From sequence record NC_016571.1: a stretch of DNA of 64,000 nt. One strand, 5' to 3'. A program made the translations under genes and the position numbers. The stretch's first letter is position 1; each line of letters opens with the position of its first letter. Below the pieces are notes generated by a model that saw nothing but the letters and a program-made list of their open reading frames with translations, did not search any database and was not told the DNA's origin. This document shows, piece by piece, positions 16,880 to 22,086 of this stretch.

Positions 16880-18628
16880 TTATGCTGCTTTTTTCATTTG
16901 TTCGATGAATGGGATTACAGACTCTTCATAGAAAGAGTTGATTTCAGTTAACTGAGGCATCCCGTAAATGGTATTACACAATGTCACTGCGTTAGCGATC
17001 GGTGATGATGCATAGTTCACACCAACGCGACGGAACTCGAAACGGTCCAGTCCTTCAATCTCACACACTTCCATCTTAGTAGTCTTGTTAGACACGTTAA
17101 GTGAAACTGTGATATGAGGGTAGGCACCTGTTACGTCGATATCGTCCGTATCCCCACGACCACGTGAACGCCATGAAGGAAGTCCAGCATAGATAGCTTT
17201 ACCTTTATCTTCATTAAGCTCAGCATGGAGCAGAGCGATCCAGTCACGCAGGTCTGGCTTGATCTCTTTCCAAAGATCTTCCTTCTTACGACCAACTGTA
17301 CCCCAAACATAACCTTCTTTCAATGCGATGAATGAAAGCTTATCGGAGATCATTGATGGTTGTGATTGGTAAGACTTCAGTTCAGAAGAAGTTACCAGAG
17401 ACGGAAGTGACAGTGAGTAGTCGTTAGTGGCACGGTTCAGATCTTCAATGACCCAGTTATCTCGGATGTTATACATTACGTATTCGTACGGATAATTGGC
17501 TACCATGAATTTGTGCCATTCAACAGAACCAGGTTGCAGATGTTCTGCTTCAGGAATATACAACTTCCCTTCTACCTTCTCAGCCTTAGCTGTGTTCTGC
17601 AACGAATAAGATTCCTTCTTACCCATAGGAGCACGTTTAATTGCATAGAAAGACATTCCGTCAAACCACTGCCAACGAGCTGGGGCTTGAACTACTGGGA
17701 ATCTTTCTTGTGGTTCTAAAGGAGATTGTGAACCATCTACTTTACGTTTAAACTCACGACCTTTAAAGTAATAGTAATCTTGATACGGTTTAGGAATAGA
17801 AGGATCAGAATAAGTCTCAGCTAAATTGTAACCTTCATTTTCAAGAGCTTTCTCATTCTGCTCCATATCAAAGTTTGCGTTCCAGCTAACAACGAAGTCC
17901 ATTGACATCCGGTGCCAAGCTTGTACGTTATTATAAACAACCTGACCTGGCGTGTTAGCCAGTTCCCACTGGATCGTTACACCGTGCTTGTCCATATAGT
18001 CTTTCAAGTGAATCGCCGCACACTCGTTCAACTTACGGATAATAATCGCGTCGTCTTTCTGATCTTCTTCTGGGAAGTAACTACGAAGACCCGACCAATA
18101 GGCTTGTTCCTTCATAGTAGTAGAAGCCATGTTGATTGGACCGACGGAGCCATCTTTCATGATGTAAGTTTCAACGTCGTATGCCGCAACCTTAAAAGCT
18201 TCTGCTGGTTGGTGGTCAGGGAATCTTTCGTAATACTTTTGTTTATAGATTACGGGAACAGATTCTTGACACCCGAATACATATGGGTTGTTCTTCATGT
18301 CAGAGATCTGAGCTTTACGATCTGGTCGACCAAAGAGACACTTACTGATCTGTTCTGCTAAACGTGATTCGTTGGTTGAGTGCTTGTCGCACTTGTTCGC
18401 TTCGATATAGTCACGTTTATCTTTAAAGCCTTGGTACTTCTTCTTAACAATATAGAAGTCGCGTTTATAGTTCTCAATCTGAACTAAACGGTCGGTACGT
18501 TTGCCGCTCTGATGGATATCAGTTACCTTGGCAGTAAGTAAATCATTACCACCGCTAAATTTATTGAAGGATAAGTAAGCGTGCTTACAAACGCGTCCAA
18601 CAATAGGATCTTCGATTTTATCTGTCAT
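16880..18628 (-). CDS. Split family-B DNA polymerase, 3'-5' exonuclease plus motif A subunit (phiKZ gp82-like)
   Basis: ExoI AYDVET; ExoII VSWNANFD; YSLQNTA; ExoIII YNIRD; PolB motif A DIDVTGAYP near the C-terminus. No motif B or C. Confidence 0.85.
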   Translation of the reverse strand: MTDKIEDPIVGRVCKHAYLSFNKFSGGNDLLTAKVTDIHQSGKRTDRLVQIENYKRDFYIVKKKYQGFKDKRDYIEANKCDKHSTNESRLAEQISKCLFGRPDRKAQISDMKNNPYVFGCQESVPVIYKQKYYERFPDHQPAEAFKVAAYDVETYIMKDGSVGPINMASTTMKEQAYWSGLRSYFPEEDQKDDAIIIRKLNECAAIHLKDYMDKHGVTIQWELANTPGQVVYNNVQAWHRMSMDFVVSWNANFDMEQNEKALENEGYNLAETYSDPSIPKPYQDYYYFKGREFKRKVDGSQSPLEPQERFPVVQAPARWQWFDGMSFYAIKRAPMGKKESYSLQNTAKAEKVEGKLYIPEAEHLQPGSVEWHKFMVANYPYEYVMYNIRDNWVIEDLNRATNDYSLSLPSLVTSSELKSYQSQPSMISDKLSFIALKEGYVWGTVGRKKEDLWKEIKPDLRDWIALLHAELNEDKGKAIYAGLPSWRSRGRGDTDDIDVTGAYPHITVSLNVSNKTTKMEVCEIEGLDRFEFRRVGVNYASSPIANAVTLCNTIYGMPQLTEINSFYEESVIPFIEQMKKAA

Positions 18629-18681: not shown

Positions 18682-20049
18682 TTGCCCTTTTATTTTACTC
18701 CCGGAGTAACACTAGAAATGTTAGATATTAACTTTCTGAATCCCAAAGCCCCGCTGAACTTTGCGGGCATGGAGTTTATGGACTATGTTAGTTCTGACCT
18801 CTATCCTAGCCTCATCAAGTTTTTCAGTGACTATACTTTCATCGATGAAGAAACTGGACTTGAACGCATCAACGTAAGTAAAGAATCCGTAGAACGTTTC
18901 CATGACATCGTTTTCCCACTTACCGGAATGGACGTACTGTTCACCGAAAACGCACTCATCGGAAACATGGCGGTCGATGTAGGATACTTGTCCCCGCATA
19001 ACCTTTTAAATATCGCTGCGCTGGATATGTACATCGATAAAGAAGAAACTAACGTTGCCCGTGCAATGAAAGTTCTTAAGACTGATGTTCTCAAGGGTTG
19101 GGTTGATACCTCTACCGGTAAAATTGGTGGAGATTTTAGCAAGGTACCTATTACCATTTCTGTCAACGTTTGGGCTGACGAGTGGATGAAACGCAAAGTC
19201 CTGGCTAAACTGAAAATCAGTCTCCCTGAAGCACTGGCTATAACCGTGTGTCACGAATTGGGCCACGTCTTTACTGGTTTCCTTTATGTTACCCGCACTT
19301 GCTTCGATGCCATTCTTCCGGTCATCGCTATTAAGCAAGTTTGTGGTGGAAGCATCTACGGTAAAGAGCGCGCAACTATTATTAACGATACATTGAAAGA
19401 GTTGGATATCCCACCAACCGCCAAAGTAGAAGAGGTAGCCAGAATGGAAGAAGACCAATTAGCGGTCTACTTCAGCAAAGCTATCAATAACCGAGACCTG
19501 AACCGCACCTTGTCAATTGGTGGTGCGTATCGTGGCTCTGAAGTATTGGCTGACCTTTATGCTGTCCGTATGGGCTGTCCTAAAGCAATGTTGGCTGCTG
19601 CGGGTGCGCTGAAAAGTACGTTCCCTGATAAAGGCACGGCTGTCCTCGGTGGTATCACCTTCTTCCTGGCTGTAGCCGGTACATCAGTCCTGGCAGGTTT
19701 TGCTGGTGTTATTTTTGCTGGTATGTTGCTTTTACGCTTTGGTGCGTACAACATCCCTAACCCTTCGTATGACGCTCCTTATCGTCGCATGAAGAATATC
19801 CTTCGCGATACCGTTGTTCGTCTGAATGATGATAAAGGGATGGATAAACGTGAAAAGGCTAAACTCCTGGCTTCGGCTAAAGAGATGGAGACTATGATCT
19901 CCGACTCCAAACCTTTCTTTGAAGGAACTGGTGTCCAACGTCTCGTGGGGTATATCCTTTCCGGTACTGACTTCCGGGCTGCTGACTTCGAGCATTACAC
20001 CGAAGAACTCATTGGCCATACTCTGTCACTTTATAAAGAAGCTTTCTAA
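18682..20049 (+). CDS. Head-cluster virion protein with M48-like Zn-metalloprotease motifs (probable start ATG 18718)
   Basis: VCHELGH (19252-19266); EVLADLYAVRMG about 91 aa later; hydrophobic hairpin AVLGG...LLLRF; N-terminal AGME site. First gene of the head cluster. Confidence 0.6.
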   Translation: MPFYFTPGVTLEMLDINFLNPKAPLNFAGMEFMDYVSSDLYPSLIKFFSDYTFIDEETGLERINVSKESVERFHDIVFPLTGMDVLFTENALIGNMAVDVGYLSPHNLLNIAALDMYIDKEETNVARAMKVLKTDVLKGWVDTSTGKIGGDFSKVPITISVNVWADEWMKRKVLAKLKISLPEALAITVCHELGHVFTGFLYVTRTCFDAILPVIAIKQVCGGSIYGKERATIINDTLKELDIPPTAKVEEVARMEEDQLAVYFSKAINNRDLNRTLSIGGAYRGSEVLADLYAVRMGCPKAMLAAAGALKSTFPDKGTAVLGGITFFLAVAGTSVLAGFAGVIFAGMLLLRFGAYNIPNPSYDAPYRRMKNILRDTVVRLNDDKGMDKREKAKLLASAKEMETMISDSKPFFEGTGVQRLVGYILSGTDFRAADFEHYTEELIGHTLSLYKEAF

Positions 20050-20058
20050 GGAATAACC

Positions 20059-20490
20059 ATGTCTCATTTGGCTCACATTGTAAAACTTAAGCAAGACCTG
20101 ATCGCTAATAAAGTGGTCGCTCCTGCTGATCAAATCGCAGTGGTTCGTACCGCTTATGTTAAAGCACTCATCAATGTTAACGCTGTTAACAAGTTGGATG
20201 AAGATCAGTGCATTAACTTTAACCGTTTCGTACTGGGCTACTGGAATGAAGTAACTCCTGTAAACGGTCCACTGGTCATGGCTATGATCGGTAAGTTCTT
20301 CCGTTCCTTCGACGCGTTTGTCGCTAGCACTATTACCGCCAACACTTTGGAAATCCAGGTAGTTGATAAAGTAGAAGGTGTCGACTTCAAATGGGAAGAA
20401 TTGGATTCTTACCGTGAACTGGTACAGACTCTGATTGCTGAAGGTAAGCACAAGCTGGAACAATTCCTGCCTACCGATAACATCGTTTAA
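20059..20490 (+). CDS. Hypothetical protein (probably virion-associated)
   Basis: AAGGA SD; within the structural operon. Confidence 0.7.
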   Translation: MSHLAHIVKLKQDLIANKVVAPADQIAVVRTAYVKALINVNAVNKLDEDQCINFNRFVLGYWNEVTPVNGPLVMAMIGKFFRSFDAFVASTITANTLEIQVVDKVEGVDFKWEELDSYRELVQTLIAEGKHKLEQFLPTDNIV

Positions 20491-20502: not shown

Positions 20503-22086
20503 ATGTCCGAAGAAAAGAAAGATCAAAAGACTGATAGCGAATCCGTAGAGCTGGGGTCAGTACTCCAGCTTCACCCTCACAAGCCAACCACTAAAGTTAA
20601 TACGGTTGATCGTAAGGACGGAGAAGAATACATCTCTCTTGATGATGTATACGAAGTTACCGGTCAGGAATCACTTCAAATCCTTGCGGCTAACTGTCGT
20701 GAGTTTATGAATAACAAACGCCTGGCTCCATCAGGATACACTGTGCTGCTTCTGGCGGGCAATGAATCCATGATCCCTGGCTATGACCGTTATAATGCGG
20801 TTAAAGGCGGAGAGGGCTTCCTGGAAGCTCTGAAGAAAGGTTTCGTCATTATCATCAAGAACGCTAAGCGTTTTATTATCGCAGTGATCGATTGGGGTGT
20901 GGCGCGCTTGCGTGCTTTGCTGGCTTTCGAGAAAACTGAGAAAGAACTGGCTATTATTGCTAGCGTATCCAAAGAAGTTAAAACTAAACTTCTGGGTATC
21001 CTCAGTGAACTTGCTGATGGTGAGAAAGTTCCTTTCGATACAGCTGAACTTTACGCTGCCCTGCCAGGCAATATCACAAGTACTGACGCATTCTCCATTG
21101 TGCGTGGTGGAATCAATAAAGGTATCACCGCTCAGATGAAGAACTTCCAGTCTGTAGTGAAAGATCTGGATGCTGCTTCTCAGCTGATGATTCGTGCCGG
21201 TATGGATGCGAAGAACTCACGTAGTCGTTATCAAATGGCAGTGCGTAAATTACGTCAGGCGTTCCGTGACCGTGAATCGTTCTCTGCTGCTGATGTAACT
21301 GAGTTCCGTCATGCTATCGATAAAGAGCTGGTAGAAGCTCTGAACCCAGAACCAATGCGTGATATGCTCGATAAGATCATTACTCGTGTATATGACATTG
21401 ATTTGGGCAACATCGGTCTTGATGGTGCGTTTAAAGATAACCTTCGCAAACAACGTGAAGAACTGACTAAAACTGTTCAGGTTAAAGTTACCCCTGAAGA
21501 GTATGAAGAGTATCGTGGGATTGCTAGTAACCTGGCAGTCACAATGCTCAAGCAGTCTTCCGATCGTTTCGATGCTAACCAACTTGCAGTACTGAAAGAC
21601 GCACTGGAAGTTAAAGATGCCGAACTTATTGAAGAGATTCAAAATGCGTTCCCAGAACACGGCGTACTTTCTACAAGCTACACTGCTTATGCTGCTCATA
21701 TATCTGAGTACGTATCAACCATGGAATACCTGGTAAACGTTTGCGGTAACGTCCGTCGTTCTATCGCTAGCATTATCAACTGGGGTAATAAGGTTGACCG
21801 TCTGATGTTCTCCTACATCACCAAAGACATCTCAACTATTCTGGCTGCTGAAGATGAGCTACTCTCTAAAGAGAAAGTAGATGATCTGGCCGCTAAAGAT
21901 AAAGATGGTAAACGTGTCGATTCTATTTTGAATATCGATTACGATGCTACCTTTATTGCTAAGCACCCTGTCTATGGTCGAGCTATTCAAGCTTATCGTT
22001 TTGAAACCAGTAAGCTTCGTCAGAAGTTTAAAATGATTGATGAAGTGAATAAGCTTCTGAAGTCTATCGGTGCAAGGACTATCTAA
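20503..22086 (+). CDS. Putative internal head protein with G-x-E processed propeptide
   Basis: TGQES, AGNES and GGEGFLEALKKGF followed by an amphipathic helix. Confidence 0.65.
   Translation: MSEEKKDQKTDSESVELGSVLQLHPHKPTTKVNTVDRKDGEEYISLDDVYEVTGQESLQILAANCREFMNNKRLAPSGYTVLLLAGNESMIPGYDRYNAVKGGEGFLEALKKGFVIIIKNAKRFIIAVIDWGVARLRALLAFEKTEKELAIIASVSKEVKTKLLGILSELADGEKVPFDTAELYAALPGNITSTDAFSIVRGGINKGITAQMKNFQSVVKDLDAASQLMIRAGMDAKNSRSRYQMAVRKLRQAFRDRESFSAADVTEFRHAIDKELVEALNPEPMRDMLDKIITRVYDIDLGNIGLDGAFKDNLRKQREELTKTVQVKVTPEEYEEYRGIASNLAVTMLKQSSDRFDANQLAVLKDALEVKDAELIEEIQNAFPEHGVLSTSYTAYAAHISEYVSTMEYLVNVCGNVRRSIASIINWGNKVDRLMFSYITKDISTILAAEDELLSKEKVDDLAAKDKDGKRVDSILNIDYDATFIAKHPVYGRAIQAYRFETSKLRQKFKMIDEVNKLLKSIGARTI

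Follow-up and report, generated by a model that had tools for sequence, protein, structure and literature searches.

The M48 peptidases (Ste24/ZMPSTE24, HtpX, Oma1 and BepA) carry an HExxH motif, followed on a later helix by a third-ligand Glu within ExxxD. ExxxD is the classic gluzincin arrangement of thermolysin-type enzymes: its Glu supplies the third zinc ligand, while the Asp braces the site. In HtpX and Ste24, transmembrane helices sit between HExxH and this Glu. Here we describe a phage protein that resembles these enzymes, gp100 of Pseudomonas phage OBP, the product of OBP_100. The DNA analysed (from here on, the window) is a stretch of 64,000 nucleotides of record NC_016571.1, which is positions 62001-126000 of the OBP genome. 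The open reading frame (ORF) of interest is 100% identical to JN627160 80718-82049, where GenBank labels it 'putative virion structural protein'. A model that saw only the letters of the window had proposed, in what we call the original prediction, that this is a virion-packaged protein from a head cluster, with an M48-type signature, a membrane hairpin and an N-terminal processing site.

Relatives of this protein have been found in several phages. SPN3US gp45 is a 50.3-kDa head protein that is cut at ASE-20 by the prohead protease gp245, according to mass spectrometry (PMC10052503 Table 2). The cut was seen in every virion and head preparation (PMC10052503). The protein is also enriched in purified heads, with 899 peptide-spectrum matches in a 37-slice head analysis. 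Purified virions of phage Goslar contain its counterpart, gp067, which was identified by 19 peptides with 47% coverage and is estimated at roughly 32-76 copies per virion; one of the peptides covers HEIGH. The phiKZ member, gp84, carries the annotation of a structural head protein. With orthologs in SPN3US heads and in Goslar virions, the predicted packaging of the protein in the virion is supported.

The family is thus not new. It is already known as a head protein, and proteomics papers list it as 'head, unknown function'. Its zincin or M48 character is already in GenBank notes, and probably also in Iyer et al. 2021 (PMC7824862), who mention a 'conserved, uncharacterized zincin-like metallopeptidase' in group 1 jumbo phages. 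New for OBP are a corrected start codon, a domain map, a family-wide table of invariant residues, profile and fold evidence, and the link between AGME-19 and ASE-20. For OBP, the result is a better annotation.

PHROG 2767 matches OBP gp100 with an E-value of 3.9e-92 (over residues 15-454 of a 455-residue ORF), and tblastn connects it with the SPN3US, Goslar and Moabite clades. Going by sequence, OBP gp100 is the ortholog of phiKZ gp84, SPN3US gp45 and Goslar gp067. The family of phiKZ gp84 and SPN3US gp45 belongs to the core head proteins of those jumbo phages that are phiKZ-like and form a nucleus. A tblastn search with one family member as query finds members in at least 274 phage records, which include phiKZ-like Pseudomonas, Erwinia, Salmonella, Vibrio, Ralstonia and Bacillus phages.

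The phiKZ, SPN3US and Goslar orthologs share with OBP gp100 their length (413-457 residues), the order of their parts, HExGH...ExxxD, a G/A/S-x-E site, a hydrophobic stretch and the gene neighbourhood. They differ in sequence, being only 16-19% identical to it, and in having a shorter uncharged stretch, of 19-37 residues, where OBP has 34 and its clade reaches 61. In addition, several distant orthologs reach or approach the Pfam threshold for M48, unlike OBP gp100.

Residue numbers given here are those of a 443-residue protein. HELGH occupies residues 179-183 and EVLAD residues 275-279; the second His and the Glu are separated by 91 residues, just as had been predicted. Among 35 relatives with 25-67% identity, H179, E180, G182, H183, E275, A278 and D279 are all invariant. 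A broader alignment of 34 sequences, with 16-58% identity, adds phiKZ gp84, SPN3US gp45, Goslar gp067 and Moabite gp313, each at 16-19% identity. Here too H179, E180, G182, H183, E275 and D279 are invariant in 34/34, and A278 is kept in at least 90%. The conservation check that came with the original prediction, on both His and both Glu residues, therefore comes out positive for all four, down to 16% identity.

Another of the most conserved stretches of the protein is YDAPYRR, whose Y351 and R357 show no variation, phiKZ, SPN3US and Goslar included. This motif could contact lipid head groups, or it could complete the active site.

Similarity to M48 becomes visible through the family. A profile was built from the broad alignment, including the distant clades, and searched against 177,635 distinct PDB sequences. 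The best match is ZMPSTE24 (E 0.0023), and yeast Ste24p is next (E 0.015). The distant clades were added because a profile of the close family alone reached ZMPSTE24 only at E 1.3. The match consists of two collinear stretches. HExGH falls onto ZMPSTE24 H335-E336-H339, so that HELGH of OBP aligns with H335-H339, and SExxAD falls onto E415-D419, which puts E275-D279 opposite the Glu ligand and its ExxxD on the later helix. H335, E336, H339 and E415 comprise the known zinc ligands and catalytic base of that enzyme.

The predicted fold was compared with VIA-align. With the full-length model, generic helical hairpins that match residues 300-345 dominate the results, and ZMPSTE24 and Ste24p only appear at ranks 31 and 39. 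The domain was therefore refolded without the hairpin. Residues 20-300 on their own fold with a predicted local distance difference test score (pLDDT) of 85 and a predicted template modelling score of 0.83. The catalytic core of this model (101-300) has a three-stranded sheet, a long active-site helix, a helical insert and a helix with the Glu. Against 48,161 representative chains, ranks 1 to 3 go to ZMPSTE24 (Z 6.8), Ste24p (Z 5.7) and the minigluzincin abylysin (Z 5.5). The top 40 also holds BepA (rank 15, Z 4.9), selecase, jannalysin, PprI and BlaR1. The ZMPSTE24 and Ste24p superpositions have a high root-mean-square deviation (rmsd). As far as a predicted model can tell, the signal in this comparison is that one enzyme clan is enriched at the top ranks, and it does not lie in individual Z values.

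In the relatives, PF01435 is the only Pfam family that recurs, and 7/35 close relatives match it. The scores are 20.4 bits for Moabite, 18.2 for P0116, 17.7 for SPN3US gp45, 17.5 for P0104, 14.2 for P0107 and 11 for Goslar, with none for phiKZ. Most of the ortholog matches cover both motifs. OBP gp100 does not reach the gathering threshold of 20.3 bits, and a six-frame scan of the OBP genome with PF01435 gave no match at E<=10. In the ESM Atlas, neighbouring viral clusters have PF01435 in 15-63% of their members. The named matches that follow the orthologs in BFVD are 'zincin protease' (of Bacillus phage AR9), 'beta-barrel assembly-enhancing protease' and 'Peptidase M48 domain-containing protein'. 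Others have noted the likeness as well: the GenBank note for the Moabite protein gives HHpred 98% to HtpX 3CQB together with a BLAST link to phiKZ084, the AH04 ortholog is labelled 'peptidase', and the AgentSmith ortholog 'beta-barrel assembly-enhancing protease'.

The AR9 entries appear to be a pair of paralogs, A0A172JI27 and A0A172JHV9, which weakly resemble the domain (BFVD, E 1e-3 and 1e-2). The family may have duplicated in the lineage of AR9 and PBS1.

Because profile, fold, Pfam, ESM Atlas and BFVD converge, OBP gp100 is best read as a highly divergent clan-MA(E) gluzincin that is nearest to M48, and not as a regular member of M48. Like HtpX, Ste24 and Oma1, it pairs a peptidase with hydrophobic helices. 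The layout is different, however. Enzymes of the HtpX/Ste24/Oma1 type have membrane helices between HExxH and the Glu, where OBP gp100 has a soluble insert that is helical and mostly non-hydrophobic, and its hairpin comes after the Glu helix. It also has two additional parts, an alpha/beta subdomain at the N-terminus and a helical region at the C-terminus. It lacks Pfam-level similarity, and its family is packaged in a capsid. The M48-type signature of the original prediction thus stands as far as profile, fold ranking and the recurrent PF01435 matches of orthologs go, but strict membership does not, given the missing Pfam match of OBP gp100 itself and the place of its hairpin.

The minigluzincins and the M56 protein BlaR1 are also close in fold, since the core superposes over nearly the whole of the target. 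For abylysin this is 94/105 residues with an rmsd of 3.4 A and the Z of 5.5, and the minimal gluzincin core of selecase (Z 4.8) and BlaR1 (Z 4.4) superposes on the OBP gp100 model too. Unlike OBP gp100, these are soluble archaeal proteins of some 100 residues, or sensor-transducers, and they have no sequence-level signal to it.

The strict invariance of the catalytic residues argues that OBP gp100 would be a working peptidase. In such an enzyme the zinc would be held by H179, H183 and E275, with E180 as the residue that activates water and D279 as the brace of the site. It could also be that the zincin fold only serves as a scaffold or peptide-binding module, in a structural or chaperone-like pseudo-enzyme. 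The strong divergence from cellular M48 would go with that, as would the absence of any reported catalytic activity for a member of the family. Pseudo-enzymes usually lose their catalytic residues though, and here the catalytic Glu, both His, the ligand Glu and the Asp are kept at 16% identity. We give this explanation a very slim chance.

The N-terminus of the protein has what looks like a leader. OBP gp100 has A-G-M-E at residues 16-19, and AlphaFold2 (AF2) gives residues 1-17 a pLDDT below 50. A Glu stands at P1, 10-25 residues from the N-terminus, in 34/34 sequences. The P3 residue is G in 22 of them, A in 9, S in 2 and T in 1, which means G/A/S in 33/34. This pattern fits the phiKZ prohead protease, which cuts at S/A/G-x-E, and agrees with the A-x-E sites mapped in SPN3US. 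The SPN3US ortholog has A-S-E at residues 18-20, aligned with E19 of OBP.

Because it aligns with the mapped ASE-20 cut of SPN3US gp45, AGME is well supported by homology as a predicted prohead-protease processing site, as the original prediction had proposed. Among the N-terminally processed SPN3US head proteins then known, gp45 was the only one with a propeptide the size of a T4 capsid-targeting sequence (PMC5694885). The phiKZ homologs of conserved cleaved SPN3US proteins are all cleaved as well (PMC10052503).

In this the family resembles the T4 internal proteins (IPI-III and Alt), which also have a short leader that is cut after a Glu by the prohead protease, and which are also stored in the head. 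There is no sequence relation between them, and whereas the T4 proteins have been shown to be injected, ejection of the phage family is something we infer.

After the Glu helix comes the hydrophobic part. Residues 306-339 of OBP gp100, 34 in all, are uncharged and hydrophobic, and AF2 puts helices at 304-320 and 323-345, which agrees with the predicted hairpin of about 35 residues. The Kyte-Doolittle mean over 19 residues is 2.13 in this hairpin, and 315-333 is the only stretch of the protein where it is at least 1.6. All 34 relatives have a hydrophobic stretch at the equivalent place with a 19-residue mean of at least 1.6, and the median uncharged length is 37 residues. It is at the same time the least conserved segment, with a mean identity of 0.29 versus 0.42-0.64 elsewhere. 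Low identity with hydrophobicity maintained fits helices that face lipid, and from this we infer that the hairpin may insert into a membrane.

Mature SPN3US gp45 keeps its full mass of 48.2 kDa (PMC10052503), and therefore the hairpin is retained in the head. This bears on the idea that the protein sits in the host inner membrane during assembly, where it would nucleate or tether proheads and enter the head as a by-product, with the peptidase perhaps serving release from the membrane. The constant presence of a hydrophobic stretch speaks for such a tether, and so does the short leader that resembles a capsid-targeting sequence. Moreover, Chaikeeratisak and colleagues are said to have reported in 2019 that chimallivirus capsids start assembly at the host inner membrane. 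A hairpin that stays in the mature head protein speaks against it, and the copy number in Goslar virions exceeds what a single nucleation site needs. We consider this tether very unlikely.

On balance we think it probable, with ample room for doubt, that OBP gp100 is a divergent but catalytically active metallopeptidase of M48-like type, which reaches the prohead by means of its leader, is shortened by the prohead protease and remains in the capsid in tens of copies. By analogy with the short T4 capsid-targeting sequences, the 19-residue leader would carry the protein into the prohead, after which the serine prohead protease of the phage would remove it behind E19. The tens of copies would be kept inside the capsid and would exit with the DNA. 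The hairpin could then anchor the enzyme in the inner membrane or in the early-infection vesicle, where it might cut a membrane-proximal substrate. The main text of the paper with the 28-protein cryo-electron microscopy model of Goslar makes no mention of gp067, which would fit an internal, non-symmetric location.

An action at the membrane after ejection is favoured here over a role in head maturation. All 14/14 mapped cleavages in SPN3US are A-x-E sites that are attributed to the serine protease gp245 (PMC10052503 Table 2), and this leaves no orphan cleavage for another enzyme. Other reasons for the preference are that the leader resembles those of the injected T4 internal proteins, and that a conserved hydrophobic hairpin makes little sense in a capsid.

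The competing view is that of a second morphogenetic protease, which acts inside the prohead or capsid as it matures, or else on the inner body when ejection takes place, and which is not delivered to the host. Iyer et al. 2021 (PMC7824862) proposed such a role for the 'zincin-like metallopeptidase' of group 1 jumbo phages. Their accession AMR59696.1 differs from the Special G ortholog, and its identity with the gp84/gp45 family is not confirmed. The family does sit in heads beside heavily processed proteins, and its orthologs are without disruptive transposon insertions, like most virion genes. Against this stand the 14 cleavages that gp245 already explains and a hydrophobic hairpin with no obvious use inside a capsid, and we regard a maturation protease as unlikely.

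The transposon data come from phiKZ, where orf84 has 0 filtered insertions in 1242 bp, versus a genome mean of one per 42 bp. The genes orf85-87 likewise have no filtered insertions, and because they are equally empty, the gap in orf84 could be a polar effect. This is one of several points that weigh against the active, membrane-delivered peptidase that we prefer. Single-sequence searches with OBP gp100 gave no match in Pfam (E<=1), NCBIfam or PDB sequences. The VIA-align Z-scores of 4.4-6.8 fall within the tool's own ambiguous range, and only have weight through the ranking and its agreement with the sequence. The fold check that the original prediction had called for gave a divided answer: VIA-align ranks ZMPSTE24 and Ste24p first for the predicted domain, but Foldseek against the PDB finds nothing significant for either the full model or the 20-300 model, its best matches being unrelated and at E>0.1.

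The hairpin adds further points of this kind. Its arms are short in OBP, at 17 and 23 residues. The uncharged stretch measures 19 residues in phiKZ gp84 and 25-37 in the SPN3US clade, and usually has a Pro at its centre. Counts of the flanking charges give no clear positive-inside signal. The element could be a full hairpin, a re-entrant wedge, a buried surface or an oligomerisation element. Finally, we found no experiment in the literature on the biochemistry, zinc binding, proteolysis, ejection or membrane association of any family member. Text searches of the literature turned up neither PHIKZ084 nor gp84 in a phiKZ context, and the family is not mentioned in the papers on the early-infection vesicle that were searched.

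This vesicle is where the family could be of wider interest. In nucleus-forming jumbo phages the DNA enters a lipid vesicle together with a set of injected proteins, and both the full set and the roles of its members are unsettled (Goslar structure preprint). Few head proteins have an enzyme active site that can be recognised, and this family is one of them. Vesicle biogenesis, host takeover and defence evasion are processes for which a membrane-anchored protease, delivered when infection begins, would be a concrete candidate. A more specific proposal is that the ejected enzyme is anchored by its hairpin in the membrane of the early-infection vesicle, and that its activity, or a wedge-like hairpin, is required for forming or opening the vesicle or for handing over the genome to the phage nucleus. 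We hold this to be improbable as it stands; were it true, the OBP gp100 family would be among the first vesicle-resident enzymes known for these phages.

The gene itself needed a correction. The ORF caller starts at TTG 18682, which gives 455 residues over 18682-20049 on the forward strand, and GenBank starts at ATG 18718, which gives 443. The 80/80 database homologs are 441-457 residues long and have as their first residue the Met of ATG 18718. Reading the sequence, there is a GGAG 11 nucleotides upstream of this ATG, and inspection upstream of TTG 18682 revealed no Shine-Dalgarno. Because of the GenBank choice, the N-termini and lengths of the homologs and the upstream GGAG, the true start is probably ATG 18718 and not TTG 18682. 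The ORF as originally predicted does exist and holds HELGH, EVLAD, the hydrophobic stretch and AGME, but its TTG start gives way to the likelier ATG. Coordinates of all features are in the table.

Table 1. Features of OBP_100 and its neighbours, in positions of the window.
Feature	Position	Strand	Basis
OBP_100 coding sequence, 443 residues and stop; ortholog of phiKZ gp84 / SPN3US gp45 / Goslar gp067	18718..20049	+	JN627160 match, PHROG 2767, homolog N-termini
In-frame TTG extension, probably untranslated	18682..18717	+	Absent from homologs; contains GGAG
GGAG, likely ribosome-binding site for ATG 18718	18703..18706	+	Sequence reading
Predicted 19-residue propeptide, ends A-G-M-E, prohead protease cut expected after E19	18718..18774	+	Alignment with SPN3US ASE-20
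N-terminal alpha/beta subdomain, residues 20-100	18775..19017	+	AF2 models, pLDDT 90-97 over most
Zincin (M48-like) catalytic core, residues 101-300	19018..19617	+	Fold ranking and profile against PDB sequences
HELGH, H179-H183: two zinc ligands and catalytic Glu (predicted)	19252..19266	+	HExGH in 34/34
EVLAD, E275-D279: ExxxD, predicted third zinc ligand	19540..19554	+	E275/D279 invariant; ZMPSTE24 alignment
Hydrophobic helical hairpin, residues 304-345 (uncharged 306-339)	19627..19752	+	AF2 helices, Kyte-Doolittle
YDAPYRR, conserved post-hairpin motif, residues 351-357	19768..19788	+	Alignments
C-terminal helical region, residues 358-443	19789..20046	+	AF2 helices 354-371, 377-396, 405-418, 421-442
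OBP_101, virion structural protein, phiKZ gp85 position	20059..20490	+	PHROG 14520, E 2e-48
OBP_102, virion structural protein, phiKZ gp86 position	20503..22086	+	PHROG 14541, E 1e-190
OBP_099, DNA polymerase, divergently transcribed neighbour	16880..18628	-	PHROG 3011, E 2e-207; annotation

The predicted 'head cluster' is roughly right. The two genes that follow downstream belong to head-protein families, but on the upstream side lies a DNA polymerase gene that is transcribed divergently. The position of the gene is what one would expect of the gp84/gp45 family, whose members lie beside the DNA polymerase and 5' of the gp85-like and gp86-like head genes. The order with an OBP_101-type gene beside the gp84-like gene is also found in phiKZ, SPN3US, Goslar, Moabite, PCH45, Special G and AgentSmith. 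Besides its match to its own family, OBP_102 has a weak second one (E 0.004) to an 'internal head protein' PHROG.

One block of genes recurs in phiKZ, SPN3US, Goslar and Moabite. It consists of the DNA polymerase, the M48-like head protein, a head protein of about 145-170 residues and a protein of about 350-575 residues. Wherever the fetched stretch extends far enough, this block also includes a large virion protein on the reverse strand. Its first three or four genes are found again in PCH45 and Special G. The block is also found in AgentSmith, a 200-kb Bacillus phage, where the polymerase is on the same strand with one gene in between. Because of its presence there, the block of polymerase and head genes is older than the split of these phages between Gram-negative and Gram-positive hosts.

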